In this document: positions 2,527 to 43,298 of the stretch, one piece after another
Position numbering within the stretch: the stretch's first letter is position 1
Layout of the letters: every line of letters begins with the position of its first letter
Assembly (NCBI GenBank): GCA_964234715.1
Contig: OZ174277.1
Origin: Podarcis melisellensis
Lineage: Eukaryota
DNA: 64,000 bases
Strand: one strand, 5' to 3'
The notes under the pieces: model-generated
The model's input: only the letters and a program-made list of their open reading frames with translations
Databases searched by the model: none
Told to the model about the DNA's origin: nothing
Program-made: the position numbers and the translations under genes

Positions 2527-3360
2527 TGTGTGGACAGGAGGAGTCCCTTCCAACCCCAGGTTACTCCCGAGTGGAATAATGACTCAAGACAACGTGCTAT
2601 GGGATTAAAATTGGCCACAACTTTATTAAGTTTCAGATGTAGGGAGACCTTGGCTCAGGCATTGGGCATTCATCCTTCCCAGTCCACAGCCAGGGATCTG
2701 TGGGACATCAAGGTTATCCAGAATGTGTGGGGATTGGGTTGGCTCTGAAGAACATATGTTCAAGCAGAGAGCCCGCCCCCTGTTTTATCGCCGTCACAGG
2801 GGAGAGTTATGACAACCTTTCAGCGAATGGCCAATGCTTCCCCTCAAGACCCCTTTAACGGGGAACCCTGAGATCACACCCCCCCCCCCAATTTATGGAA
2901 GATAGACTAAATGATTCTGCCCAAGGCCTGAAACCGCCAAAGTTGTGACATTTTGCTACAGGGAAGGCAAAACCTGCCAATACAGGAAAATTCCTTTCTG
3001 GCCTTTCAACAGCGGCCTTAACGTAGTAGCACCCACATACCTGTGGAGAAAAGGTTAACTTGCAAAAGAAGGCTTAACTGAGGGAGGGCAGGGTGGGAGA
3101 AGCTCTGGAGCCAACTGACGCTTTCCAGGTACGATTCACCATCTGTTATCTGGGCAGGGCGGTCCCTCCCCTTACCTGGCCGATCCCCTGGCAACGCCTC
3201 CCCAGGTGGGATTGGGCGATTGGCTGAAGTAGGCAGAGACCTCCAAGTATCCAGCCTGGGGAGGGCGAAGCCAGCCCATACTACCAGAAGCCGCATGGGA
3301 TCCGGGGGGCTGTGCACGACCACGTAAAAGGCGCCCCCCATTTGATGTGGGGAGCGGTCG
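2527..3360 (-). mobile_element. Solo A-spacer-B terminal unit of an Ngaro-like tyrosine-recombinase retrotransposon (diverged family)
   Basis: On the minus strand it shares, in order, a C-tract border, the U-rich loop motif, TAGCAAAATGTCACAACT, TGGCGGT, GGGT-N4-CGTTAAAGG, CCAATGCCTG, AATAAAGTTGTGGCC and a CACAC end with the terminal unit of the full element at 42141-42939. It is about 830 bp, has no ORFs, and 'gttat' occurs at both junctions. Confidence 0.8.
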
Positions 3361-12046: not shown

Positions 12047-14580
12047 GCTCAGCCATTTCTAATAGCCATTTGAAAGTGAATCTACAAAACTCTTCACCAT
12101 GAAGGGTACTGCTTAAAAACTTGTTTGTAGTGATTTAGGCAGAAACACCAAGGATTAAATGTCGTGGCCAATCTAGAGGTATTTCCTCAAGAAAATACCA
12201 GATGTTGTTTCTGTATGACTGGGTACACACCATACATTTAAATGACATTCTCCTCCCCCCCAAAAATCCTGTGAACTCTAGTGAAAGGTATGGTGTTTAT
12301 ATCAAGGGCAAAGCAACATGCCAAACATTCATGCACAAATATACTCTTTAAAACTAGGAAACTTGGCAGCTTCCAGAACTGCCAAACTCTCTGGGCCCAA
12401 TTCTGCATTCCCGTTGCAAATTAAACTATTAACAAAAGGTTAAACACAGTATTTCATTGCACTGTTTTTGTTTTCATTCAGCATTTTGGACAAGGGAGAA
12501 TCTGGGGTCAGTGACCCTAAAACCTCAATATTACGCAAGCAAGTTTGGACTTTAAGCCAGAAACTTGGTGTAACCATTGAACTTTTAACCTAAATAGTCA
12601 GTGAAGAATTGCTGGCTGGCAGGAGTCCCGCCTGATAAATTTCGGCTTGCTTTGTGTGTATATTTTTAAGAAGCGTCCAACAAAAATGCCTGATTTTGCT
12701 GAGCAAGTCAGTTTGCTGGGCAGCAAATTATGGCTGCAAGCACATTCACTTGGGAGTGAGCCCTATTGAATTTGGTGGACTCATTTCCAAGTAAACATGT
12801 GCAGGATTAGACTGCATAGCTCTTTTTTCTAAGGCCAACTGGCATCCTTCAATTTGCTCCCGTGTGTCTACCAGACTGGACTGAAAATGTAGATAAGGGT
12901 TTTGGCCCTCCACCCTTGTGGATTAGCAAAGGACTTGCTGGTACAACAGGCTATATTTACAGTATCCCCATAAAGTACCCTCCTTGGCTTCTGCCCTCTT
13001 CCATCAGGTTTTGCTGATTTGCTCTCTAATATCTAATCTGTAATGGTACCTTAGATCAACAATTCCTCCCTGAGGTTCCAAAAAGAAACTGCCAATTCAT
13101 TCTTCCTGAACTGAAGTTCTTTACCACACAAATTGGTTTCCACAGCTTTTTCTGTGTAGTTTTAATCCATGATAATCTTCAAGGGATTATTTTCAATCAG
13201 GTATGGGGTTTTTTCCACAGTATTTTACCTGTGCTGAAATACACAGCCTTGAACTCACTGTTTATAAACAGTTTAGCATGGAAAGTTCCCATTAATTCTT
13301 ATTTTTTGAAGGAATCATTATTGTATAGTTGAATAGCCTGCAACAAGCTAAAAGGCCACTAACTAATGAGGCAGCTTCCATAATGTCTGCTTTTGACAGC
13401 AAAGGCTTCTGCTGGCTCTCTCAGCTTCTATGACTATAATACAGAATATGCAAGGCTGCATAGACACTAGACCTTTAAAGCATATTCAAAGCACATTCTT
13501 TCTCACAAAGAATTTTGGGCACTATAGTTTACCCCTCAGGGTTATAATTCCCAGCAACCCCTAACAAACTTTATCTGTAAAATGCCTTGAGTCCCATCAG
13601 GGAAAAAGGCAGACTATAAGTAAATCTATAATAATATAACAACAAATTGCCGTGCCCAGAATGCTTTGAGGGGAGGATGTGTTTCAAATGTCCTCAAATG
13701 TATAGTGTGTACGCTGCCCAAATCATCTAACCAGTTTCCAATCCAATATCCACTTAATAAAACCCAAAGCATTTCCTGAACACTTGCTTTTGAGTGTGAT
13801 CCTTTATGAGTTTTGCCAGAATATGAAGTCCCATTCTAAATCTAAGAAGCTGTTTTGTTAAAGGGATGTGGGGCAGAGCAAATGATTAACAGGACAAAGG
13901 AGCCCTAGGGCTGCTGCAAAGCCTTCCTAGTCAAGGAGCCCTGACATTTCCATTTAATATCAGGGAAGCCAACCTTGGCGACACTTGGCAATGACATCTC
14001 TCCAAAGCTTTAAAATGATTGCTCCTGCCCAAAGCAAACAATTTGTCCAAATCAGGACAAGTGTCTCAAAGGAATGAGGTTGAGCTCAACTTACTAAATT
14101 GTTTGAACAGCAAAACCATTAATCATGGGGGACTGGAGCAGAGGGCAATGAGGGAAGATCGGTTTTCTGAACTGCTGGGCTCTGTGGGGATATTACAGCC
14201 AGGCTTCTTGTTGTCCCTCCCTGGTGTGGAAGGAAAGCCAATGGGTCAGCTACCCTGTAGTACAAATCAGGAAATGATCTCATGCCTTTGCAATCAGATC
14301 TTCAAATATTTAGGCTAAGGAGGTCGCACTGGGAATGCTCTCCATTTTCTTATCAGTAAACAAAAGAACTTTAGATTAATGCTGAGTGAGGAAACATTTT
14401 CCCCCTAAATCTCTAGGGTTCACAGATAGAATGTAATGTGTGTGTACACACACATATACCCCACACATATAGCTCTTTCTGCTGCTGGTTTTCCTTAATA
14501 GCAACCAAGCTTTATGTCAAAGAGGCTTGGAAAGTCTACAGCAAATTGTTTATACTCCTGTGCCCTTTGGAGGTGAATAG

Positions 14581-15551
14581 TAGGGCTGGGTGATATCAGC
14601 TTTTCAACATCGCGGTGTATCGCCAGCCAAACATCACAGTTTGGCAATGCCCCTTCCGACCTTCAGGAGGAGGGGGGGTTGTGGGATCACGACCCCGCCC
14701 ACACTCGCTCTCGCGAGGCTGGCGTCAGCCTCGCGGGAGACAGGGATTCCCTCAATTAGCATACCCTGTGGCGCCAGCCAATCGGCTGGCGGCAGGGGCG
14801 GGGCTTCGTAGGGCCACTTAAGGTCAGGGCAGCCCCTGGCTCGCCCCCTTTCTTCCCTGGAGACGACGCGGTTTCCCACCCACCCGCCCTTTAGGTTTTG
14901 CCACTGACCTTGCTATGGGCTTCGGCTGGTCGCCGCAAGGGGCCTGGTAGGAGTTTTTCCATTTGGCTAATTGGCTGGTTTGGTGAGCCACTTGGTTTTT
15001 TCGCCTACCTCGTAGCAAATCGTCACAACTCCCTCGGTTTTGGCGGTAGGCATTGGCCGGGGTATTATCATGCAGATGAGGTTGGGGGGGAGGAACGCCA
15101 TCACCTCCCCCAATGCTTGAAGGGTAGTTCGTTAAAGGACTCCGAGGGGCGACGCCTCGTCCGAAACCTACGGAGGCTAGGGCCTAAAGCGCGCCCCCGA
15201 GCAGTAACCCCTCGGGGAGCGCCTAGGGATATGCATCTCGGGTGGCTCCCCCTGTTGGTGTTTAACCCTTCCCGGTCAGACCGGATAGTCGGTTAGGGCC
15301 AATGCCTAAAGCCAATACCCTTCTTTCCTGTAATCAATAAAGTTGTGGCCATTTTCGCCCATTAACCTAAAAACTCTGTGTCCGTTGTCTTCATTTATTC
15401 CACCTGTGGGGGGGAGGGAATAGCCACACAATATACCACCACTCAGGCGTGGTGGTGGTTTCACCAGCGATATACTGCTGAGTTAAACCAACATAGCAGT
15501 CTGCTCCTCATACTGGTCCTGGGCGATATATTGATATATTGCCCAGGCCTA
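14581..15551. mobile_element. hAT-type MITE interrupted by an Ngaro-like solo unit
   Basis: TIRs tagggctgggtgatat / atattgcccaggccta, with a perfect 8-bp TSD gtgaatag at 14573-14580 and 15552-15559. Confidence 0.85.
14639..15430 (+). mobile_element. Solo A-spacer-B terminal unit of an Ngaro-like retrotransposon (second family)
   Basis: About 792 bp against 799 bp for A2-spacer-B2 of the full element. Shares TAGCAAATCGTCACAACT, TGGCGGTAGGCATTGG, GGGT-N4-CGTTAAAGG, CCAATGCCTAA and AATAAAGTTGTGGCC. 'caca' occurs at both junctions; CCAAT and GC boxes lie in the A part. Confidence 0.85.
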
Positions 15552-15934: not shown

Positions 15935-16440
15935 GTTGTAGCACAGCAATGGAGCATCTGTTTTGCAATACAGGAGGTCCATTGTTTGATCCCCAGCTTC
16001 TCCGGTTAGGGCGAGAAAGCTATAGAATTATGTTCAGCCTGGAGAAGAAACGACAGAGAGGTGATACAGTAGTCACCTTCAAATATCTGAAGGGCTGTCA
16101 TGTGGAAGATGGAAAAGGCCTGTTTTCTACTGCTTCAGAAGGTAGGACCCAAACCAGGATTCAAATTACAAGAAAGAATAATCTGACTAAACATTAGGAA
16201 GAACTGTACAGCTGTCGAGTGGACTACCTTGGAAGGTGGTGGACTCTCCTTCGCTGGAAGTTTTTTAAACAGAGGTTGGATGTCTGCCTGTCAAAGATTT
16301 TTAGCTGCATTACAGGGAGTTGAACCAGATGACCACTTGGGTCTCTTCCAACTCTACAGTTCTATGATTCTGTGATAGATGGATCAACTGGTAATCTGCT
16401 GGTCTGACTCAGTAGAAGGCAGCTTCCTATATTCCCTATG
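15935..16440 (+). mobile_element. tRNA-derived SINE (Squam3-like) with a nested CR1 3' fragment (~16020-16375)
   Basis: tRNA-like head, then CR1 ORF2 end (FSLEKKRQRGDTVVTFKYLKG) and 'ttccaactctacagttctatgattc' tail, then SINE tail 'ggtctgactcagtagaaggcagcttcct'. Confidence 0.65.
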
Positions 16441-32898: not shown

Positions 32899-35601
32899 CT
32901 TAAGAAACCACAGCAGTCAAGACTAGGATGCTGACAACCAACACCAGCAACAGAGGGGAGGACCTGGTGCAACGAGATCTAGGGAGGCTCAGTAGCCCAT
33001 CAAGGACCAACAGCTCCAGAGTTCTGCAAGCCATTTCCTCCCTTCAGCTACTTCCATTTCACACAAATATTGGCACATTGCACAGGCATGCATTTGTAGC
33101 CCATTCCAGAACACAGCTCTTGATTCACTTTCTTCAATGGAAAGGCACCAAAATATGCTTATACCATAAAAGCCAGGCACACGGAGAGGAATATAAATGC
33201 CTAATCGTGGGGTGAACATCCTCCAAGAGAAATCTTGGAAATCGGTGGTCTCGTGAACTCCAACAGATCAAAACCACAATGAGGTCATTTGTTAACTGTG
33301 GAAGAAGACTGCCTTTGGCAGGCTTTCATCCAGTTTGCCTCTGCTGCATTAATAACCTGGGACTTTTGAAATTCATAATGCAAGCCAGTCATTTTCTGAT
33401 AAAAACAGAAGGGGATTATGCACATTTCATCGTATATGACAGTATTAAATGGAGCTTTGAAGCAACGCTGTGGGTCTTGGATAGCTCCCCTGTGTTCTTA
33501 AGCTACTGGCTGCCTAGGTTGGAAGCAAAACCAGCCTCCCTTACCCCTGGTGATAACTCCTTCCTTTCTGCACTGGCATAAATTATATCTTGGAGTCCTT
33601 CTAATAAAATTGAGGCCATCTATTAAAATCAAGAGTTGGAAACTCCACAGCCACAAAGCCTCTGCTCGTTAAAGGCCCACTTCCTATCAATCATCTTGAA
33701 ATAAATTTGAAATGAGATGGGCAGTGCCTTCATCACCAGCCATCAACACACTTCTCTGAAAATGAGATTGCTATTCCCCTCTCTAATTCAGAAGACATTC
33801 AGCACCACAAGTCACAGACTTAAGACAGTAAGTGATAACAATGGGAATGCCTTGTTTCAAACTGTCAAGGACTGCTGACTACTGCCCCATCTGATGAGTC
33901 ATATAAAATGGCAGTCTCTCAGATATGAACCAGATCTGGCTTCACTCATCTAGCTTCACTCCATCTTCCTCCACTGGCCATTGAAAGAGTGTAAAGGACT
34001 TTCTTTTCCATCTAAACCATTCTCGAATAGCAGGGTTTACCTGAAATCTAGTGTGCCTTGCTCCTTGGCCCCAATTCTTCTCTTGTTCTCTGGGTTATCC
34101 TTCGGCTTTCAGTCCTGGATCCTAACTCTCTCCAGATCACAATCAAAGGAAGTATCTCTTGATACCAGTCAAGCAGTCTCTCTTCTACATTCAGCAAGAA
34201 ATAAGTGTGCCATCACTCTAGTTCTTACCGACCACCAAGTAACCGGGTCATCAAGTAAAGCACCTCAAGATTTATTTCTAATGGCATGTAGTATAGCTTT
34301 CTTTTAAATAGCTACAATAAAACAGCAAATGCATTAAAAGAGCTCAATACTGACAGTCTCAGCAGATACAATGGGGAGCCGTTAAAAGAAAATATTTTCA
34401 CACACAGGCATAAATAACATTTAAATTGTTGTTGTTCTTCATGGTACGAAACTCGGAACGTAGATTTTGGGGCAGGAAAATACTGATCTTAATTATCTAA
34501 GACTGGTGGCGGAGATGACAGGGGGTGGGCAAGATCCCTTTGTACAAACAGAAGCTGTTCCACATGCAAGGACTTAGTTGAATACCCCTCTTCACATATC
34601 AAACTACAGAACAACAAAACCAAGTCACCCTCATCAAATACTATTAATCATCCTCACCAAACAAACAAGATATGCAAAGCATCATGCCTCTGCTTCTTTT
34701 CTTCACCCTCTCTCATTTCCGTTTCAACATTGGTATTTAATCCATTGCGCTGAGGAAAAAACACTTTCAGTAGGACTTGAAAACCTTATTATCACCTCAC
34801 TCACTCACCAGAGGTAGAGCCAATCGCCATCATTACCCTTGTGTGTGGTTTTATAGAAGTTTATTTCTATGCCTTCACCTCACATCACTGGAAAAGTGAT
34901 TACGAGAGGCAAGACCTTCTCAGTGATGTTGCCATGGCTCAAAAATACTACCCCCCTGTAAAGAGAATCAGCCCTGTTTAGACAGAAACTGAACAGGCAT
35001 TATAATGTTTAACTCCTTGTTGCTCTGATATTGATTCCTAGACTAATTATTTGTAGTTCTTATGGTGCTTATGGTCATTATTATATGGCTATAAAATGTT
35101 TCAGGAACTATATTGTATTCATTGCACTGCATGTTAAATTGTAATCTGCTCTGAGTGCTCTAAGGGCAGAAGAGTGGGATATAAATACATAACAACAAAA
35201 GCAGAAACACTCATATCTTCCAGGTCATCTCTTGAGTAGGCAGCCCTTTGCTGAATTTTCATATAGGCTCCAATAGGAGAATCAGCTCTCCAATTACTGT
35301 GAACCCCAAGGACTGTGAAGAATGTGGGCAATGTGTGAGAGCAGAAGGGGAAGGAGGGGGAAAATGAACTATACAGGCAGTGCTATTTTTGAGCTCAGCT
35401 TTTCCCATCAGTCCTGTTAACTTTTCTACAGCAGATAGAAAATGCTGGACTAGTCTGGGGGAAAGCCACACGGGTGGATAATTGCCTCTTTCAATTTATG
35501 AAGACCACAGAGTCTCATATTCCATGTTAGCTCGCCTTCTGATGTAACAGCGACTGTCATAAGTTGTTCTGATTAATAGTCGGCGCTGTAGGAATTAAGG
35601 G

Positions 35602-35814
35602 AAAGCGTGTTCTCCCTAAAAGAGAGCACGTGTTGCGGATGGGGCCAGGCAAAACCCAGGTTGCCAAGCATGATTAGATAGGAGGGGCTTGGAGCAGTTT
35701 GGATATTGGTGTTGCTGAGGATAAATTGATGTTGCCAATTTAGGGGTGGGATTAGTGGCTATTTAAGTAAGGTTCACAGCTTTCTCTTTCTCTTTTGCTG
35801 TGAACATCGGATCT
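35602..35814 (+). repeat. Split direct repeat A1 (213 bp)
   Basis: Identical by eye to 42141-42353. Confidence 0.95.
35705..35766 (+). promoter_or_regulatory. Putative Pol II promoter in repeat A
   Basis: ATTGG at 35705, GCCAAT at 35734, GGGGTGGG at 35743 and TATTTAA at 35760-35766, followed about 25 nt later by a pyrimidine-rich initiator-like tract. Confidence 0.6.
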
Positions 35815-36742
35815 TCAACACCGGAGTGGATCGGCAAAAGAGTTGGTTGTATAAACCCTTGTTCCTTTTCTTCCTCTTCCTTCGTTTCTATCTATTTCTT
35901 ATTTACTTATCCTCCCTGCTAATTCACCCTTCTATTTAATTCACCTCCTCTTATTTTCTAATTGTTGATTTGGGACTCTCATTGGGGGGGGGAGCCTCAC
36001 GGTCCCGGGGGGGGCTTACGGCCCGGTTCTCGGCCGAGCCACTAGACCCTGGACGGGAGTTTGGCCCCTTGCAGGCTGTTGTTTCATATTTTAACCTCCC
36101 CACCCCCCCCAACCTGCATCCGCAGCTGCGTGCGCTGGAGCCTGACGCGGCTGGCTTCGGCCCGGTCGGGCCTCCTCCGTTGCGGCTGCCCAGGCTTCTC
36201 CGCGGCTCACTCGGCCCGGCTGGGCCCGCGCCGCTTCCTCCCACCCCACCCCCTTCCCGCGACTGGGGCCTGTGAGCGCCAGGGGCCTCCTCGGGCCTAC
36301 TCGGCCCTGTCGGGCCTGCGTTGGCCCGGGGACCGGCAGCGGCCTGTGCGGCCCGGCCCCGCCCACCTCCGCTAGGCGCCGGGTGCTGGGATCGGTTGGC
36401 GCGGCCTAGCGGGGCCTGCCCTGCCGGGCCTTCCTTCCACGGCCGCCCCCCCCGTTTAGGAGCGGGCTCCAGGCGGGAGCCGCTGGGGCAGGTAACGACT
36501 TGCCTGGCGTCGGTGTTGGCGGCGCGCTCCTTCCGCGATCGCGGGCCGGGGTTTCGTGCGCTTGAGCCCTGCAGGCCTTTAGGCGATCTGGGGGCTCCCG
36601 GCCGCTCTTGAGCCCCTTCCTCCCCCTTCCCACCATCTCCGCCCCTGTGGTTTTGGGGGGGCGCCGGGTTGGGGACTGGTGGTGATCCTCCATTTTTCAG
36701 GTAATTTGGCGGGAGCGCCATTTTGTTGTGTTCAGGCCTGCA

Positions 36743-36841
36743 GCGCCATCTAGTGGGCCAGCTCCGTAACTGCAGCCGGCTGAGAGCTAGTGCTGGCCCA
36801 ACCTGAGTGGAGCCCTCTAGTGGCTACCTCTTGCATTGCAG
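36743..36841 (-). promoter_or_regulatory. Two tandem CTCF-like sites with upstream motif in the element leader
   Basis: The minus strand reads CTGCAGTT-acggagctggc-CCACTAGATGGCGC and CTGCAATG-caagaggtag-CCACTAGAGGGCTC. Confidence 0.65.
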
Positions 36842-37059
36842 TGTAATTTGTTACTACCCTTGCTATCTGTGGATTTGCTTTTCAGCTGATTAAGCTGCTT
36901 ACATTTTGAGGTCAAAGCCTTGGTCTAAATTGGGTCGTTACTTACCTACTGGTCAATTAATTGCTGAATATTAATTTTATTTGTATTGATTTGCTTAGTT
37001 CAATTTTATTGTTTCTTTGAATAATTTTAATTTTGTTTTATTTTACGCCAGTAGTAGGA

Positions 37060-38586
37060 ATGGCTCCAAAAAAGGCTACAAAGAAGTCTGGTCCGCCCCT
37101 CTCTGCGAAACGGCCCATAAGGGGCCCGTCTCAAGCTCTTCGCTCTCCTGCGCCTGGTCAGTCGTTGCAGCGCATTCAAACCATGGTCTCCAGTTTGGCC
37201 GGCGACCCAGTGGCATTGGCAAGGGTGGAGGCCGAGATGGATGGCCTGCTACACCGCGCCTCCACCCCTTCGACTTCATCAGCAAGGCTGGTTCCTCCTG
37301 CGGGTACCGCGTCCCCAGTGTTGTCATCCAGTGAAGACGAGAGAGAGGCATCATTTGCCGGGGGTGTTCTTCCAAATACGCAGTTGGCTCGGTCGCTGGT
37401 TTTACCTGCCCCGCAGGTCTCTGTGGCTAGGGGTCGTGGCCGGTCCAGGGCCGGGACCAGGAGAAGGGAATCAACCCGGGGACGTGCGGCGCGGGTTTCC
37501 CCCGCGCAGCCTCCAGTAGCAAGTAGGGCAGTGCCGGGGCATTCACAAGTTGTCTCTTTCCAGTCATCTCCAGGCGCTGGGCAGCAGGGCGATGTGTCTG
37601 AGTCTTCAGTAGAGGACAGCCTCCCCCCACCTCCAAAGACCTCTTCTGGAGGGCATCGCCGCCGCAAGAAGAGGTCCAAGAAGCGTGCCAAGCGGAGACG
37701 AAGGGACACCTCGTCGTCTTCTTCAGGTACATCTTCTCAGACTTCTAGTAGCGATGAGGAGGCGTCCTTGAAACTTTATTGGGGTTTTGGAGAGGCCTCG
37801 GGGCTCCCAAAGTGGGTTTGGGAGAGGAGGGCGAACTCCCACAGGGCCAGGTACGGGGCAGTACAAGAGTGTTTGGATGGAGTGTTGGTACCTGAGGTAA
37901 GGGTATCCACCAATTCAGCCAGGGATCTTATCCCAGGGTCACATCTGTCCGCCACATTACGGTCCAGGATCTTGAATGGGCGTTATGTGGATATTTTTAG
38001 CTTGGCCCCCCCTCTCGAGGGCCAGGAGCCCCTGGATAAGGGCTTGCCTCCAGCTAATAAACGTTCGATCTTAGCAAAAGCGGACAGGAATTTTGAGCGT
38101 TGGTTGGATAGTTTCCAGGTTTTTGCTGGAGTGGTTTCCGCGGCTTATCCCAGGAGGTCTTTGCACTTGTGGGTTTATCAGTCCATAGTCCGCTCGGCCT
38201 TTACTATGGCCGGGGAAGCTGCCGCTCTGTCCTACGATCAGAATTTTAGACGTAGAGCGGCCAAGATCCCTACTGCCCGCTGGGATCGAAAAGACTTGGA
38301 TGTCTGGACCACTTATGTGGCCCCTAGAATTGATAAGAAAGCCCCTGATACACAGAAGTTTAAGTCGGCCCCAGCGAGACCTGGCCGTAAGCTGGTCTGT
38401 TGGGACTTCAATAAAGGTACTTGTCCGCGGCAATCCTGCAAATATTTGCATGTGTGTGACAAGTGCTCAGGTAACCACGCAGCCTCCACATGTGCCGGCA
38501 GCCGGCGGCCATTTCGGAAAGGGGGAGGCTCACAGCAGCCTCCTAAAGCAGCTTCCCAAGCTCCTGCCACTGGAACAGGGAAGTAG
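37060..38586 (+). CDS. gag: Ngaro ORF1, Gag-like protein with a basic NLS-like tract and a C-terminal Cys/His zinc finger
   Basis: ATG at 37060 (MAPKKATKK), RRRKKRSKKRAKRRRR, YDQNFRRRAA, and CWDFNKGTCPRQSCKYLHVCDKCSGNHAASTC. Confidence 0.9.
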   Translation: MAPKKATKKSGPPLSAKRPIRGPSQALRSPAPGQSLQRIQTMVSSLAGDPVALARVEAEMDGLLHRASTPSTSSARLVPPAGTASPVLSSSEDEREASFAGGVLPNTQLARSLVLPAPQVSVARGRGRSRAGTRRRESTRGRAARVSPAQPPVASRAVPGHSQVVSFQSSPGAGQQGDVSESSVEDSLPPPPKTSSGGHRRRKKRSKKRAKRRRRDTSSSSSGTSSQTSSSDEEASLKLYWGFGEASGLPKWVWERRANSHRARYGAVQECLDGVLVPEVRVSTNSARDLIPGSHLSATLRSRILNGRYVDIFSLAPPLEGQEPLDKGLPPANKRSILAKADRNFERWLDSFQVFAGVVSAAYPRRSLHLWVYQSIVRSAFTMAGEAAALSYDQNFRRRAAKIPTARWDRKDLDVWTTYVAPRIDKKAPDTQKFKSAPARPGRKLVCWDFNKGTCPRQSCKYLHVCDKCSGNHAASTCAGSRRPFRKGGGSQQPPKAASQAPATGTGK

Positions 38587-40192
38587 TACCCTGTTCTCCT
38601 TGGCACATACCCCTGTGCGGTTACAGCCATTGCTATCATTGTTAGCTCTATACCCTGACAGTGCATCGGCATCTTATTTGCGTGATGGTTTTTCTTTTGG
38701 TTTCAGGATCCCAGTCGCCTCCACCCCTGTAGCTGGGAACCCTGTTAATCAAAAATCGGTTAAGGATATGCCAGAGGTGGCACGCAAGAAAATCGGGAAA
38801 GAATTGGCGTTGCAGCGTATGGCTGGGCCTTTTGCCACCCCCCCTTTTCCTAACTTGCATATTTCACCCTTGGGCATCGTTCCCAAAAAGGCTCCGGGGG
38901 AATTCCGCCTAATCCACAATTTATCTAGTCCTAGAGGCACGTCAGTAAATGACGTAATTCCCCCGGAGCTTTGTTCGGTGAAGTATGCGTCTCTTGATCA
39001 CGCGATCAAGATCATCAGGAAGTTCGGGCGGGGTGCCCTGCTAGCCAAATGCGACATTGAGTCGGCGTTTCGGCTGCTTCCTATTCATCCCGATGACTTT
39101 TGGCTGCTAGGTTTCCAATTTGAAGGGGGTTATTATTTTGACAAAGCTATGCCCATGGGCTGCTCGGTGGCCTGTGCGGCCTTTGAGTGTTTTAGTTCAT
39201 TTTTGGAATGGGCTTTGCGTGAAAAAACCGGTTTGGGCGGGGTTACGCATTACCTGGATGATTTTTTGATGACTTCGGCAAAAAATACGGGTAATTGTGA
39301 GGTGCTTTTGCGTGCCTTTGCCTCCCTGGCGGAGTACCTGGGCGTTCCGTTGGCGGCGGAGAAGACCGAGGGCCCTTCTACGCAGCTGACTTATTTAGGT
39401 ATCTTGCTGGATACGGTGGCCCAAACTTCCAGTTTGCCGCCTGAGAAGATTACCACTTTAAAGAGGGTCATCAGTGAACTCCTTCCCTTAAAGAAGGTGA
39501 CGTTGCGGCAACTCCAGTCGCTGCTGGGTCACTTGAATTTCGCTTGCAGGGTGGTCGCTCCGGGGAGGCCATTCTGCTCACGTTTGGCCAGACTGACATC
39601 GGGGCTGCGGGCCCCGCAGCACAGAGTGCGCCTTCCTCAACAAGTGAGGGCTGACCTTAACATGTGGTTGGAATTCCTAGAGGAATTCAATGGTGTTTCC
39701 TTGTGGCAGGACATTTTGAACCTCCATAATGATTTTCAGGTGCACTCTGATGCGGCGGGGTCATTGGGGTTTGGTCTCTACTGGGATGGTAGGTGGTGCG
39801 CGGAACACTGGCCTCCGGATTGGCGTGGAGAAGCAATAACTCGAGATTTAACGTTCCTTGAGTTCTTCCCCATTGTGGTGGCCGTGCACTTGTGGGTGGA
39901 GCATTTCAGAGACCACCGGGTTTGCTTTTGGTCTGATAACCAGGCGGTGGTGAAGGTACTGGCTAAGCAGTCTTCACGATCTCCGCGAGTATCAGCTTTG
40001 CTGCGGGCGTTTGTATTACACTGTTTACGCTTTAACATAGTGTTTTCTGCCCGCTTTATTCCGGGCATATCTAATGAGATTGCTGATGCTCTGTCCCGTT
40101 TTCAGATGGAGCGGTTCAGGTCCCTGGCGCCACTGGCTCGAGACCGTCCGGAAATTTTCCCGGATCATCTCTGGAACCTTGGCAGCACTTAG
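38300..40192 (+). CDS. pol: Ngaro reverse transcriptase / RNase H
   Basis: 630-aa ORF overlapping gag. RT motifs FRLIHNLS, KCDIESAFRLLP, MPMG, YLDDF, YLGILLD. RNase H motifs HSDAAG, LEFFP, WSDNQ, NEIADALSR. Confidence 0.95.
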   Translation: MSGPLMWPLELIRKPLIHRSLSRPQRDLAVSWSVGTSIKVLVRGNPANICMCVTSAQVTTQPPHVPAAGGHFGKGEAHSSLLKQLPKLLPLEQGSSTLFSLAHTPVRLQPLLSLLALYPDSASASYLRDGFSFGFRIPVASTPVAGNPVNQKSVKDMPEVARKKIGKELALQRMAGPFATPPFPNLHISPLGIVPKKAPGEFRLIHNLSSPRGTSVNDVIPPELCSVKYASLDHAIKIIRKFGRGALLAKCDIESAFRLLPIHPDDFWLLGFQFEGGYYFDKAMPMGCSVACAAFECFSSFLEWALREKTGLGGVTHYLDDFLMTSAKNTGNCEVLLRAFASLAEYLGVPLAAEKTEGPSTQLTYLGILLDTVAQTSSLPPEKITTLKRVISELLPLKKVTLRQLQSLLGHLNFACRVVAPGRPFCSRLARLTSGLRAPQHRVRLPQQVRADLNMWLEFLEEFNGVSLWQDILNLHNDFQVHSDAAGSLGFGLYWDGRWCAEHWPPDWRGEAITRDLTFLEFFPIVVAVHLWVEHFRDHRVCFWSDNQAVVKVLAKQSSRSPRVSALLRAFVLHCLRFNIVFSARFIPGISNEIADALSRFQMERFRSLAPLARDRPEIFPDHLWNLGST

Positions 40193-41079
40193 TTTTTCAG
40201 GGAGTAGCTGCTTCTGTCGCCCCCTCTACTTTGAGGTCCTATGAGAAAGCATGGGCCGATTTTTTGCTATTTAATGGACAGTCAGTAGCTGGGGAGGTTC
40301 TTGCCCCCCATTCTACATCCCAGGTGCTCAGGTATTTAGCACATTTATTCCAGAAGCGCAGGGCAGTCAGGACGCTGCGCCTTCACTCAGCAGCGATCTC
40401 CTTTTTTAGTAAGGCATTCTTCAACAAAGACCCGTGTGGGAAGTTTGTGGTGCGCAAGGCTTTGGAAGGATGGGGGCGATTGCTCCCCTCCGGGCTTCCC
40501 CCCCGACGACCCATCACTTTTGAACTTTTGGCAAAAATGCGCTGTAAATTGCGCAGCATCTGTTGGTCGTCTTTTGAGGCGCGGCTATTTTCCGCAGCCT
40601 TTTCATTAGCCTTTTTTGGGGCTCTGAGGGTAGGTGAGGTGGTACTGGAGCCTAAGCGGGATGGTGGTTCCAGGGGATTATTGCTACAGGACGTGAGTTT
40701 GTCTCCGTCTGAGCTTCAGGTTAACGTCAGAAATTCGAAGACAGACCAATTGGGCAGGGGTGCCATTATTCGGCTCCCGGCGTCGGGGGAACGTGGCCCT
40801 TGCCCTGTAAAAGACCTCACAAAATATTTGGCCTTGCGTCCAGCAGGTGAAGGACCCCTGTTTATTCATGAGAACGGGCGCCCTCTGGGGAGGCATCAGT
40901 TCGCCAGAGTGTTGCGTAAAGCTCTTGCAGCTTGCGGCCAGGTGGCATCGGAGTTTGCACCTCATTCCTTTCGGATTGGTGCTGCAACGACGGCTGCCCA
41001 TTGGGGTTTGTCGGTGCATGGGATTAAAGATTTGGGTCGTTGGAAATCGGGGGCATTCAAAGTATATGTGCGCACATGA
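40087..41079 (+). CDS. Tyrosine recombinase (frame open from 40087; first in-frame ATG only at 40537)
   Basis: Full catalytic set: R (ALRVGE), K (SKTDQ), HxxR (HSFR), W (GRWKS), Y (KVYVR). Confidence 0.95.
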   Translation, partial: CSVPFSDGAVQVPGATGSRPSGNFPGSSLEPWQHLVFQGVAASVAPSTLRSYEKAWADFLLFNGQSVAGEVLAPHSTSQVLRYLAHLFQKRRAVRTLRLHSAAISFFSKAFFNKDPCGKFVVRKALEGWGRLLPSGLPPRRPITFELLAKMRCKLRSICWSSFEARLFSAAFSLAFFGALRVGEVVLEPKRDGGSRGLLLQDVSLSPSELQVNVRNSKTDQLGRGAIIRLPASGERGPCPVKDLTKYLALRPAGEGPLFIHENGRPLGRHQFARVLRKALAACGQVASEFAPHSFRIGAATTAAHWGLSVHGIKDLGRWKSGAFKVYVRT

Positions 41080-41692
41080 TATGGATATGTACTTACATTT
41101 TTTGTGTTTAACCCTAGGTTGGGCTCCTATCCGTATTTGGATAGTAGGCCACAGTATTGTACATTGGGCTGCCGTCAGAGCTCGTCAGTCTGGACTGGGC
41201 GAGGGCCTATGCTTCCCACAACACGTTCAGGTTTCCTGGATCTCCAGACGGGGGATGCTGTGGAGTGAATTCTTACCACTCATGCGAAGGCGCGTTTTCC
41301 AGGATGGTCCTCCTTCAGCGATTGTGGTGCAGCTCGGGGAGAACGATATCGTATCTTCTTCCTGCTTTGGGCTGCGTGCTGCCATTTTACAGGACTTGGG
41401 GGAATTGGCGGCCATGGTGCCTTTTACTACACTGATTTGGTCACAGTTGCTTCAACGCCGCACGTGGCGTGGTAGTCCCTGCCCAGCAGCCACTGAACGG
41501 GTTAGGAAGCGGGTTAATTCCGCAGCAAGCAAGTTGGTGGTGGGCCTGGGCGGATTGGTGATACCTCACCCTCTTATTTCATTCAAGGCTGCTGAACTAT
41601 ACAGAGATGACGGGGTTCATCTCTCTTCAGTGGGGAATGATTTGTGGTTGGATTCAGTGGTGTCCAAGTTGAGGGTCTGGTTTGCTTTGTGA
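40847..41692 (+). CDS. SGNH/GDSL-family hydrolase (domain ~41118-41692)
   Basis: Block I IVGHS, block II RRG, block III LGEND and block V DGVH. Hydrolase ORFs are known from some vertebrate Ngaro elements. Confidence 0.9.
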   Translation: MKDPCLFMRTGALWGGISSPECCVKLLQLAARWHRSLHLIPFGLVLQRRLPIGVCRCMGLKIWVVGNRGHSKYMCAHDMDMYLHFLCLTLGWAPIRIWIVGHSIVHWAAVRARQSGLGEGLCFPQHVQVSWISRRGMLWSEFLPLMRRRVFQDGPPSAIVVQLGENDIVSSSCFGLRAAILQDLGELAAMVPFTTLIWSQLLQRRTWRGSPCPAATERVRKRVNSAASKLVVGLGGLVIPHPLISFKAAELYRDDGVHLSSVGNDLWLDSVVSKLRVWFAL

Positions 41693-41720
41693 GTGGTTGG
41701 CGGCGAGCGTAGGGCTCGAG

Positions 41721-42140
41721 TGGCGGTTAGGCATTGGTTAAAATTGCTTGGTGGAGGGGTATGGATAGGCTGGGCCTGCCCCTCCAATGCTGCTGCTGCA
41801 CGGGTATTCCGTTAAAGGAATTCTGAAGCTTACCATCCCCTTCGTCCAAACCCTGACGGCAGGGTGCGGGCCGTGTAAGCTTCAAGGAGCATGCGGGGTG
41901 TAGCTGAGGGTCTGATTCACAGCTCTGGCTGGCCCTGATCTTGTTCCTCCGAACTGGCTAAGGAGTCAGTGCTGTCCCCCAAGGCGGGAGGGGACAGCTA
42001 GTCATAACCAATGCCTAAGCAACCATTCACAATTTGTATGATAATAAAGTTGTGGCCAAAATTATGCCAAAAACCTTAAACAAAAATCACGTGTCATGTG
42101 TGAGTTATTGGGGTAGGGGTTTTGAAGGACCTCGTCACGC
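41721..42140 (+). repeat. Split direct repeat B1 (420 bp), AATAAA at 42043-42048
   Basis: Identical by eye to 42517-42936. Confidence 0.95.
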
Positions 42141-42353
42141 AAAGCGTGTTCTCCCTAAAAGAGAGCACGTGTTGCGGATGGGGCCAGGCAAAACCCAGGT
42201 TGCCAAGCATGATTAGATAGGAGGGGCTTGGAGCAGTTTGGATATTGGTGTTGCTGAGGATAAATTGATGTTGCCAATTTAGGGGTGGGATTAGTGGCTA
42301 TTTAAGTAAGGTTCACAGCTTTCTCTTTCTCTTTTGCTGTGAACATCGGATCT
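42141..42353 (+). repeat. Split direct repeat A2
   Basis: Copy of 35602-35814. Confidence 0.95.
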
Positions 42354-42516
42354 CCCGCCCGCCCTCCCTTGTTGGGCTTGCGCTTGACCTTGCTTTGCCT
42401 GTCATGGGGTCGTCCGCCTTGGTGCGGGGGCCCAGTAGGAATTTACCAATTGGCTGATTAGTGTGTGCCTTTTGGGTTTTGCCTACTGCTTAGCAAATCG
42501 TCACAACTTGTAAGGT

Positions 42517-42936
42517 TGGCGGTTAGGCATTGGTTAAAATTGCTTGGTGGAGGGGTATGGATAGGCTGGGCCTGCCCCTCCAATGCTGCTGCTGCACGGG
42601 TATTCCGTTAAAGGAATTCTGAAGCTTACCATCCCCTTCGTCCAAACCCTGACGGCAGGGTGCGGGCCGTGTAAGCTTCAAGGAGCATGCGGGGTGTAGC
42701 TGAGGGTCTGATTCACAGCTCTGGCTGGCCCTGATCTTGTTCCTCCGAACTGGCTAAGGAGTCAGTGCTGTCCCCCAAGGCGGGAGGGGACAGCTAGTCA
42801 TAACCAATGCCTAAGCAACCATTCACAATTTGTATGATAATAAAGTTGTGGCCAAAATTATGCCAAAAACCTTAAACAAAAATCACGTGTCATGTGTGAG
42901 TTATTGGGGTAGGGGTTTTGAAGGACCTCGTCACGC
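42517..42936 (+). repeat. Split direct repeat B2
   Basis: Copy of 41721-42140. Confidence 0.95.
42839..42844 (+). terminator. Polyadenylation signal of the full-length element transcript
   Basis: AATAAAGTTGTGGCC is conserved in all three Ngaro-like units, with a GT-rich tract downstream. Confidence 0.7.
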
Positions 42937-43298
42937 AAAATAACAGGCTGAAAAACTCTGGGGGTTTATACCACTTTAAAGAGCTGGCCCATGAGAAATT
43001 ATACATAAAACTGGGGGTGGGGGAGGGGGAGATACCAATAATAAATAAGACCCACAGTGATGAACAGGATTCAGCGAGTGGCCAGAGAGCTCCCAAAATA
43101 ACCCTAACTGGACCAGAAAACAAAGGCCACAATATCTGACTGCCAGTGGCACTGATATGAACATCAAGATGCCCAGATGGATGGCAGTTTTCTATGTGGT
43201 TATATCTGCAACAATCTTCACATGTTTTACTTAGAAATGGAGATTAAAGTTTGAAAGCCAAGAGGTTCTATTTGTGTGGGGCAGGGTAGGTCCTTGTC

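Follow-up and report, generated by a model that had tools for sequence, protein, structure and literature searches.

Small RNA hairpins that are read by a protein commonly carry a fixed loop and a bulge on a stem of free sequence, a design found in the iron-responsive element (IRE), in HIV-1 TAR, in the hepadnavirus epsilon signal and in the phage coat-protein operators. Among retroelements, the 3' UTR stem-loops of the UnaL2 type are recognised by the reverse transcriptase (RT) to start cDNA synthesis. In the tyrosine-recombinase retrotransposons (DIRS, Ngaro, PAT and VIPER) it is not known how the RNA is chosen and how reverse transcription starts, and the primer has never been identified (PMC7192593). 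Poulter and Goodwin suggested, as cited in PMC7192593, that a hairpin at the 3' end of the DIRS-1 mRNA might serve as a self-primer. The open-access papers on Ngaro and DIRS that were searched mention no Ngaro hairpin, stem-loop or conserved RNA motif, and judged by them the hairpin described here, which lies in repeat B of a lizard Ngaro element, is previously undescribed.

The 'stringent' non-LTR stem-loops, such as those of eel UnaL2 and its SINE partner, share with the Ngaro hairpin a small size, a 3'-proximal position and a conserved loop on a free stem, and in both systems short non-coding relatives carry the same hairpin. Unlike UnaL2, Ngaro elements have a tyrosine recombinase together with an RT and RNase H of LTR type and are not target-primed, and the hairpin is found not at the very end but ~240 nt ahead of the poly(A) signal. 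The architecture matches that of the IRE, HIV-1 TAR and hepadnavirus epsilon in having a 5' bulge, an upper stem that is short (its 5 bp equal those of the IRE) and a fixed six-base loop, and as with epsilon and TAR it lies in a stretch that would be present twice in the genomic RNA; the loops themselves differ (GUUAAA in Ngaro, CAGUGN in the IRE, CUGGGA in TAR, CUGUGC in epsilon), and so do the bulge sequences. With the DIRS-1 hairpin, as far as that secondary account describes it, the Ngaro hairpin shares the order to which the elements belong, the primer question and the 3'-proximal position, whereas the DIRS-1 hairpin stands at the RNA 3' end and could prime, and the Ngaro hairpin lies within the RNA, without a free end on its 3' arm. 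The two show no sequence relation, and DIRS-1 has inverted repeats and an ICR where Ngaro has split direct repeats. Finally, the MPMV CTE and the mouse IAP RTE are, like the domain described below, structured RNA domains specific to their element, which follow the last ORF, precede the 3' repeat and carry invariant short loops on helices of variable sequence, whereas the MPMV CTE binds NXF1 through two symmetric internal loops and the Ngaro hairpin has a single apical hexaloop and no sequence similarity to it.

The window, by which we mean the whole 64,000-nt stretch of Podarcis melisellensis DNA that was analysed, contains one intact element with the following parts.

35602-42939, plus strand: intact Ngaro tyrosine-recombinase retrotransposon carrying the motif (from repeats and Pfam)
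35602-35814, plus strand: repeat A1
37033-38586, plus strand: gag, encoding a zinc-finger Gag
38300-40192, plus strand: RT (Pfam RVT_1)
40231-41079, plus strand: YR, the tyrosine recombinase (Pfam Phage_integrase)
40847-41692, plus strand: SGNH-like hydrolase ORF (GHS, GxND and DxxH blocks read)
41721-42143, plus strand: repeat B1, 423 nt, of which the first ~310 nt form a structured domain
42043-42048, plus strand: poly(A) signal in B1
42141-42353, plus strand: repeat A2
42354-42516, plus strand: spacer X, 163 nt
42517-42939, plus strand: repeat B2, same as B1, with the second hairpin copy

The element matches RVT_1 and Phage_integrase and has A and B each twice in the order A1-ORFs-B1-A2-B2, as is characteristic of Ngaro. 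A1 and A2 are 100% identical, as are B1 and B2 over their 423 nt. An extra ORF of SGNH type is known from amphibian Ngaro, and that of the window element agrees with it (PMC9210276). The closest protein relatives of the element are from Podarcis and Zootoca, and Sauria-type SINEs are present in the window. The C-terminus of Gag (window 38390-38490, residues ~455-487) holds a CCCH finger, C-x7-C-x5-C-x3-H, with a weak Pfam match to the ZAP-like zf-CCCH_10, followed by a CCHC-like knuckle.

A preliminary description of the window had reported a motif of constant spacing, GGGT-N4-CGTTAAAGG, as part of an unnamed structured RNA candidate. The motif was borne out in four copies in the window, all of them within repeat B of Ngaro elements: the pattern GGGTNNNNCGTTAAAGG is exact at 41802-41818, 42598-42614 and 15122-15138 on the plus strand and at 2868-2852 on the minus strand, hence in three families, and it had no match in 100 dinucleotide shuffles. 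The copies at 15122 (+) and 2868 (-) sit in short A-X-B remnants of two other families, without a coding part; the full-length relatives of the 15122 family are the loci L008 and L010. Each copy forms a hairpin.

41803-41823, plus strand: motif hairpin, B1 copy (from RNAalifold, pair counts with controls, and minimum-energy (MFE) and centroid folds)
G41803-C41823 and G41804.U41822: lower pairs of the B1 copy, with U41805 bulged
41806-41810 / 41817-41821: its 5-bp stem, enclosing the hexaloop GUUAAA at 41811-41816
42599-42619, plus strand: motif hairpin, B2 copy, loop 42607-42612
15123-15143, plus strand: hairpin in the second family (solo A-X-B), stem AGUUC/GGACU with one U.G pair, loop 15131-15136
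2847-2867, minus strand: hairpin in the third family (solo A-X-B), stem CCCC/GGGG, loop 2859-2854

RNAalifold on ten copies gave a bulged hairpin of seven pairs, with a 5-bp stem (ATTCC/GGAAT in the intact element of the window) and a GUUAAA hexaloop closed by C-G; beneath the bulged base, a U but in one family an A, two pyrimidines that follow the stem pair with the second and third G of GGGT. N4, previously taken as a free spacer, is therefore nothing of the kind, as these four bases and the following C pair with GG and the next three bases, and the spacing of the motif is fixed because the stem uses them. C-GUUAAA-GG, the loop block, can be called 'invariant', and so can GGG in intact elements; the fourth base cannot, being A in family L011.

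We counted pairs in a gap-free alignment of 32 columns, with 500 shuffles of the partners and with slides of one to three columns as controls. In the hairpin 95.7% of the cells are paired, compared with 87.1% when the 3' partners are shuffled (none of the 500 shuffles reached the observed value) and at most 69% with the partner displaced by one to three columns. Full compensatory changes occur at two stem positions (U-A/G-C/C-G and U-A/C-G), the other variation being from G-C to G.U, and when pairs with a change on both sides are counted the hairpin does not exceed the shuffles (227/500). Since there are only ~5 independent lineages, all of them lacertid, these covariation statistics are thin and the signal is modest; all of the pairing measures point the same way. 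The hairpin was also formed in the MFE fold of every one of the eight B domains folded, the decayed copy Z7m not being among them. Eight G.U cells on the plus strand are A.C mismatches on the other strand, and the B domain folds with -141.4 kcal/mol (z -4.5) in sense and with -116.8 kcal/mol (z -3.1) in antisense orientation, and from both it follows that the structure belongs to the sense RNA.

This polarity bears on a reading of the motif as a signal in DNA, namely an accessory recombinase site, a transcription-factor site or a hairpin in single-stranded minus cDNA. With inverted arms on either side of a 6-bp spacer, the stem formally resembles a small recombinase core site, and the intermediates of DIRS-1 are indeed single-stranded cDNA (PMC7192593). 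The G.U pairs of the intact families, however, would become A.C mismatches in the minus strand or in the symmetric half-sites of a duplex, the antisense strand folds less well by 25 kcal/mol, and variable arms around a fixed spacer are the opposite of what protein half-sites show. The crossover site, moreover, lies elsewhere. At the B1/A2 junction the last bases of B and the first of A make up the palindrome CACGC-AAA-GCGTG, and AAA is also found at both outer ends beside host DNA, so that this palindrome is very probably the crossover site of the tyrosine recombinase, with a 3-nt overlap (window 35597-35610, 42134-42150 and 42930-42945; L011 13655-13680 and 14460-14475). In four families the right end reads ...CACGCAA(A) or ...CCACAA. 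The motif was rejected as the crossover site itself, as the element ends and the B1/A2 junction map to the palindrome, 340 nt downstream of it. Altogether we regard a signal at the DNA level as very improbable.

The motif hairpin stands within a larger fold, whose other parts in B1 are as follows.

41721-42026, plus strand: long-range helix H1 closing the B domain, 5' strand 41721-41739, 3' strand 42008-42026
41753-41785, plus strand: upstream hairpin H2, GGAGGGG 41753-41759 / CCCCTCC 41779-41785, then CCAATGCT at 41784-41791
41824-41884, plus strand: adjacent module H4-H6
41824-41833 / 41875-41884: helix H4, which encloses H5
41844-41847 / 41868-41871: helix H5, GUCC/GGGC, which encloses H6
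41850-41855 / 41860-41865: helix H6, with the tetraloop ACGG at 41856-41859

The B domain (~310 nt) is thus a multi-hairpin structure closed by H1, with its 3' limit ~17 nt before the poly(A) signal, and in every other Ngaro B domain that was folded a comparable closing helix is predicted. The domain's place in repeat B means that each full-length transcript would contain the hairpin in two copies. The helix TGAAGCTTAC/GTAAGCTTCA that had been proposed at 41824-41833 / 41875-41884 is present and is predicted in both the minimum-energy and the centroid folds, and a G-rich/C-rich hairpin ending in CCAATGCT was found, as described, in two families (41753-41759 / 41779-41785 and the copy of the 15122 family). 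The pairing of CGTCC with ACGG was mistaken: GUCC pairs with GGGC, and ACGG is a tetraloop. For the 15122 family the helix CCGAGGGG/CCCCTCGG had been given as the counterpart of H4; comparison with relatives points instead to GGGGCG(A)CGC with GCGCGCCCC (15146-15155 / 15189-15197), and CCGAGGGG/CCCCTCGG stands as a competing alternative in that family.

H4 begins 0-2 nt after the motif hairpin, is 8-11 bp long and differs in sequence in every family, being UGAAGCUUAC/GUAAGCUUCA in the window element, AGGGGCUUG/CAAGCCCC in L011 and GGGGGUCGU/ACGACCCUC in L004, with G/C-rich forms in the 15122 family. Inside it follow a pyrimidine-rich internal loop, the 4-bp helix GUCC/GGGC of conserved sequence and, within this, a small hairpin that covaries and, in two families, has the loop ACGG. 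When the whole module is aligned to a covariance model, 84% of the cells are paired compared with 78% in shuffles (0/500), and the covariation score is 0.29 compared with 0.21 (1/500). The inner half of H4 is paired in 46.7% of its cells, the families differing in register there even after covariance-model alignment, and H4 is formed in all nine non-decayed copies when these are folded singly, being lost only in the decayed Z7m copy. A core that stays constant while the flanking helices differ in sequence between families agrees with the structured RNA candidate of the preliminary description. Besides, CCAATGCT after H2 (window 41784-41791; 15109-15116) repeats the 3' strand of the closing helix (CCAATGCC); its pairing with the 5' strand of H1 (GGCATTGG), as an alternative short-range fold, was dismissed since it is available in two families only, and a pairing of GGGU with downstream loops of ACCC type was dismissed as inconsistent between families.

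An invariant core between variable helices could also be expected of a self-cleaving ribozyme. Ribozymes do occur in other groups of retrotransposons, HDV-like ones in R2 and L1Tc and hammerheads in Penelope-like elements, and a catalytic RNA had been among the suggestions made earlier. However, there is no likeness to any ribozyme family: the Rfam ribozyme families gave no match even at E<=10 on the two local regions searched (41600-43000 and 14900-15420). The invariant bases, moreover, are confined to one hairpin loop and its base, with no second conserved strand or junction that could serve as a core, and cleavage inside B has no obvious place in the logic of replication. That the motif is part of a new self-cleaving ribozyme in repeat B is therefore, in our judgement, extremely improbable.

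Other known classes of RNA and sequence signals were likewise compared. The Rfam search that had been called for gave no match at the gathering threshold over the whole window, and at E<=10 over 41600-43000 and 14900-15420 it gave only weak chance matches to miRNA, sRNA, lncRNA and riboswitch (fluoride) families. An IRE has a 5' bulged C, a 5-bp upper stem and the loop CAGUGN; the upper stem of 5 bp and the six-base loop fit, whereas the bulge, U or A, and the loop GUUAAA do not, and no Rfam IRE match was found. The T-arm has a 5-bp stem closed by G-C and a 7-nt loop UUCRANN in a cloverleaf context; the motif has the 5-bp stem, but its closing pair is C-G and its loop has 6 nt, there is no Rfam match to tRNA or tRNA-like structures, and ARAGORN found no tRNA-like gene in the window. 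A tRNA primer-binding site starts with TGG and can pair over 12-18 nt with the 3' end of a host tRNA; the motif does not start with TGG. Coding sequence was rejected because B has stops in all three frames and the invariant block lacks third-position variation, and a 5' splice donor GG|GU was rejected because one active family (L011) has GGGA and the fit to the donor consensus is poor.

Among the window element and the comparison Ngaro loci, which were collected via the RT protein, five full-length elements have an intact hairpin in B1 and B2 alike. They represent four lacertid families (the window element, L011, L008 with L010, and L004), and in all four families B1 and B2 are 100% identical. 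In three Podarcis families the identity to the window element is 46-58% for Gag, 62-73% for RT, 56-65% for the recombinase and 46-60% for the hydrolase. An alignment of B from five families contains four invariant blocks only, which are the two strands of H1, the motif and the poly(A)/GTTGTGGCC block (AATAAAGTTGTGGCC), the remainder being barely alignable. Old copies have lost the motif: the CpG at the stem-loop junction has decayed to TG in L007 (minus strand, 4016) and to CA in L010 (2131), GGGT has become AAGT in L007 (14872), and the loop is changed in L004 (minus strand, 20851). As old broken copies lose what transposing lineages keep, the conservation reflects selection on the latter.

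These findings stand against the view that the block has no function of its own and was kept by chance or by descent in a recently radiated group. The sampling of ~5 lineages from one lizard family speaks for it. On the other hand, nine contiguous bases of the loop block are identical amid a barely alignable B and in elements whose hydrolases are only 46-60% identical, dead copies lose the block, and the stems change with compensation, so that we hold such a neutral origin to be highly improbable.

Two covariance models, one of 32 nt for the hairpin and one of 88 nt for the module, found 17 copies in 398 kb, all inside Ngaro B repeats and with nothing outside them below E 0.6; for annotation, then, such a model serves to find Ngaro B repeats only. 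The hairpin is absent from the Ngaro B domains of Anolis sagrei, Eublepharis, Hemicordylus, Rhineura and Xenopus laevis. The elements of this Anolis, gecko, cordylid, amphisbaenian and Xenopus are active-looking, their RT is 50-60% identical, and their B domains have the same closed architecture with different interiors. Hence the hairpin is a clade-specific module of lacertids and not a general Ngaro signal, and since active-looking Ngaro elements do without it, it is not essential to the Ngaro mechanism as such. Conservation in further families, on which the preliminary description had made its reading depend, extends to the lacertid L004, L008/L010 and L011 and is lacking in five Ngaro families of other squamates and Xenopus; taken as a whole, that interpretation is partly supported. 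Both Gag fingers, by comparison, are kept from Xenopus to lizards, in hairpin-less elements as well, so that there is no correlation of the fingers with the hairpin.

The hairpin is therefore real, specific to its clade, under selection and part of a larger conserved 3' fold, and we consider it probable that the motif is the sequence-constrained part of a functional sense-strand RNA hairpin of the lacertid Ngaro clade. A loop and bulge that stay fixed on a freely covarying stem are characteristic of hairpins that proteins recognise, and by analogy with the systems named at the outset we infer that a protein reads this one too. Its partner may tentatively be sought among the element's own proteins of the replication machinery, the RT or the zinc-finger Gag. 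Either of these would recognise the hairpin and so mark the 3' domain of the element RNA as its own template, and the marking would serve packaging, the start of cDNA synthesis or both. We favour RT or Gag on account of the position in the 3' domain, the two copies per RNA and the primer of the DIRS order, which is stated as unknown (PMC7192593). A more specific version, in which the hairpin together with H4-H6 in the closed B domain would be the site where the Ngaro RT binds its own RNA and starts the minus strand without a tRNA primer, appears unlikely. Evidence against reading by the element's own proteins comes from the loop, which is invariant although Gag is only ~46-58% identical; a conserved host factor fits this at least as well.

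Such a host RNA-binding protein could act in nuclear export of unspliced RNA (as with the MPMV CTE and the IAP RTE), in RNA stability or in the choice between the poly(A) sites of B1 and B2. A loop identical in families whose own proteins have strongly diverged is what a shared host partner predicts, the host signal AATAAA is among the other invariant blocks of B, and the hairpin is confined to one host clade, the lacertids. A place in the 3' UTR a short way before the poly(A) signal is likewise typical of elements that bind host factors. Against this, no known host-factor motif was recognised and Rfam gave nothing, and copies that are the same in B1 and B2 could not on their own distinguish two poly(A) sites. 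We regard a host protein as a rather unlikely reader, though as the main rival to RT or Gag.

A contact between RNAs was considered as well, either as kissing through UUAA, between two genomic RNAs or between the B1 and B2 copies, or as a tertiary docking within the B domain. In retroviruses the dimer initiation sites are palindromes in a loop, the loop centre UUAA of the Ngaro hairpin is self-complementary, and each full-length RNA would have two copies. Four A-U pairs are weak, however, and a dimer loop would be free to vary as long as it remained palindromic, yet here it is invariant between families. Nor was a conserved complementary partner of the loop found in the four full-length elements searched, which gave scattered 7-mers only, none at homologous positions. 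We therefore take an RNA-RNA contact to be quite improbable. The stretch CGUUAAAGGA (window 41810-41819) is seemingly complementary to what we take to be vertebrate 18S rRNA, ...UCCUUUAACG..., and a match of 9-10 nt to rRNA has a chance expectation of ~1-3%.

A 21-nt hairpin with a fixed loop and a covarying stem, selected in several apparently active lizard families, is a concrete target for mutation, for probing and for use as bait. If it is the site of RT or Gag, the replication mechanism of a whole order would be opened to experiment, and if it is where RT initiates, the DIRS order would gain its first defined initiation signal in cis, and with it an account of template selection and priming. 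A host-factor site would point to a lizard protein that Ngaro elements exploit; if it is neither, it would be a well-defined new RNA motif of one clade of transposable elements, with limited reach.

Some further observations concern the elements and their surroundings. A tRNA-derived SINE in L005 (minus strand, near 15999, 5260 and 668) has a hairpin TGTGG/CCACA with the same hexaloop GTTAAA, closed by G-C; it is probably a degenerate T-arm, and its likeness to the Ngaro loop may be due to chance. The solo A-X-B units at ~14650-15438 (+) and ~2560-3300 (-) of the window have precise element ends and no coding part, and could have arisen by recombination between A1 and A2 or by integration of a small circle, made from a circular intermediate when its two B/A junctions recombine. 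L007, L001 and L012 have ORFs followed by a single B. Between the stop codon of the hydrolase and B1 (window 41697-41720) lies a small conserved hairpin, CGAGC 41704-41708 / GCTCG 41714-41718, which is also found at L004 14335-14358, L008 14640-14668 and L009 22493-22516. A second copy of TTGGCGG, with which the closing helix of B begins, lies before this hairpin, which stands in front of B1 only and not of B2. In the spacer, GUCACAAC is able to pair with GUUGUGGC just 3' of AAUAAA (window 42501-42510 with 42845-42854; also L003 14127-14137 with 14484-14494). In the Xenopus element both sides of this pairing are altered together (GUCACAGC with GCUGUGGAC), a compensatory change that supports it.
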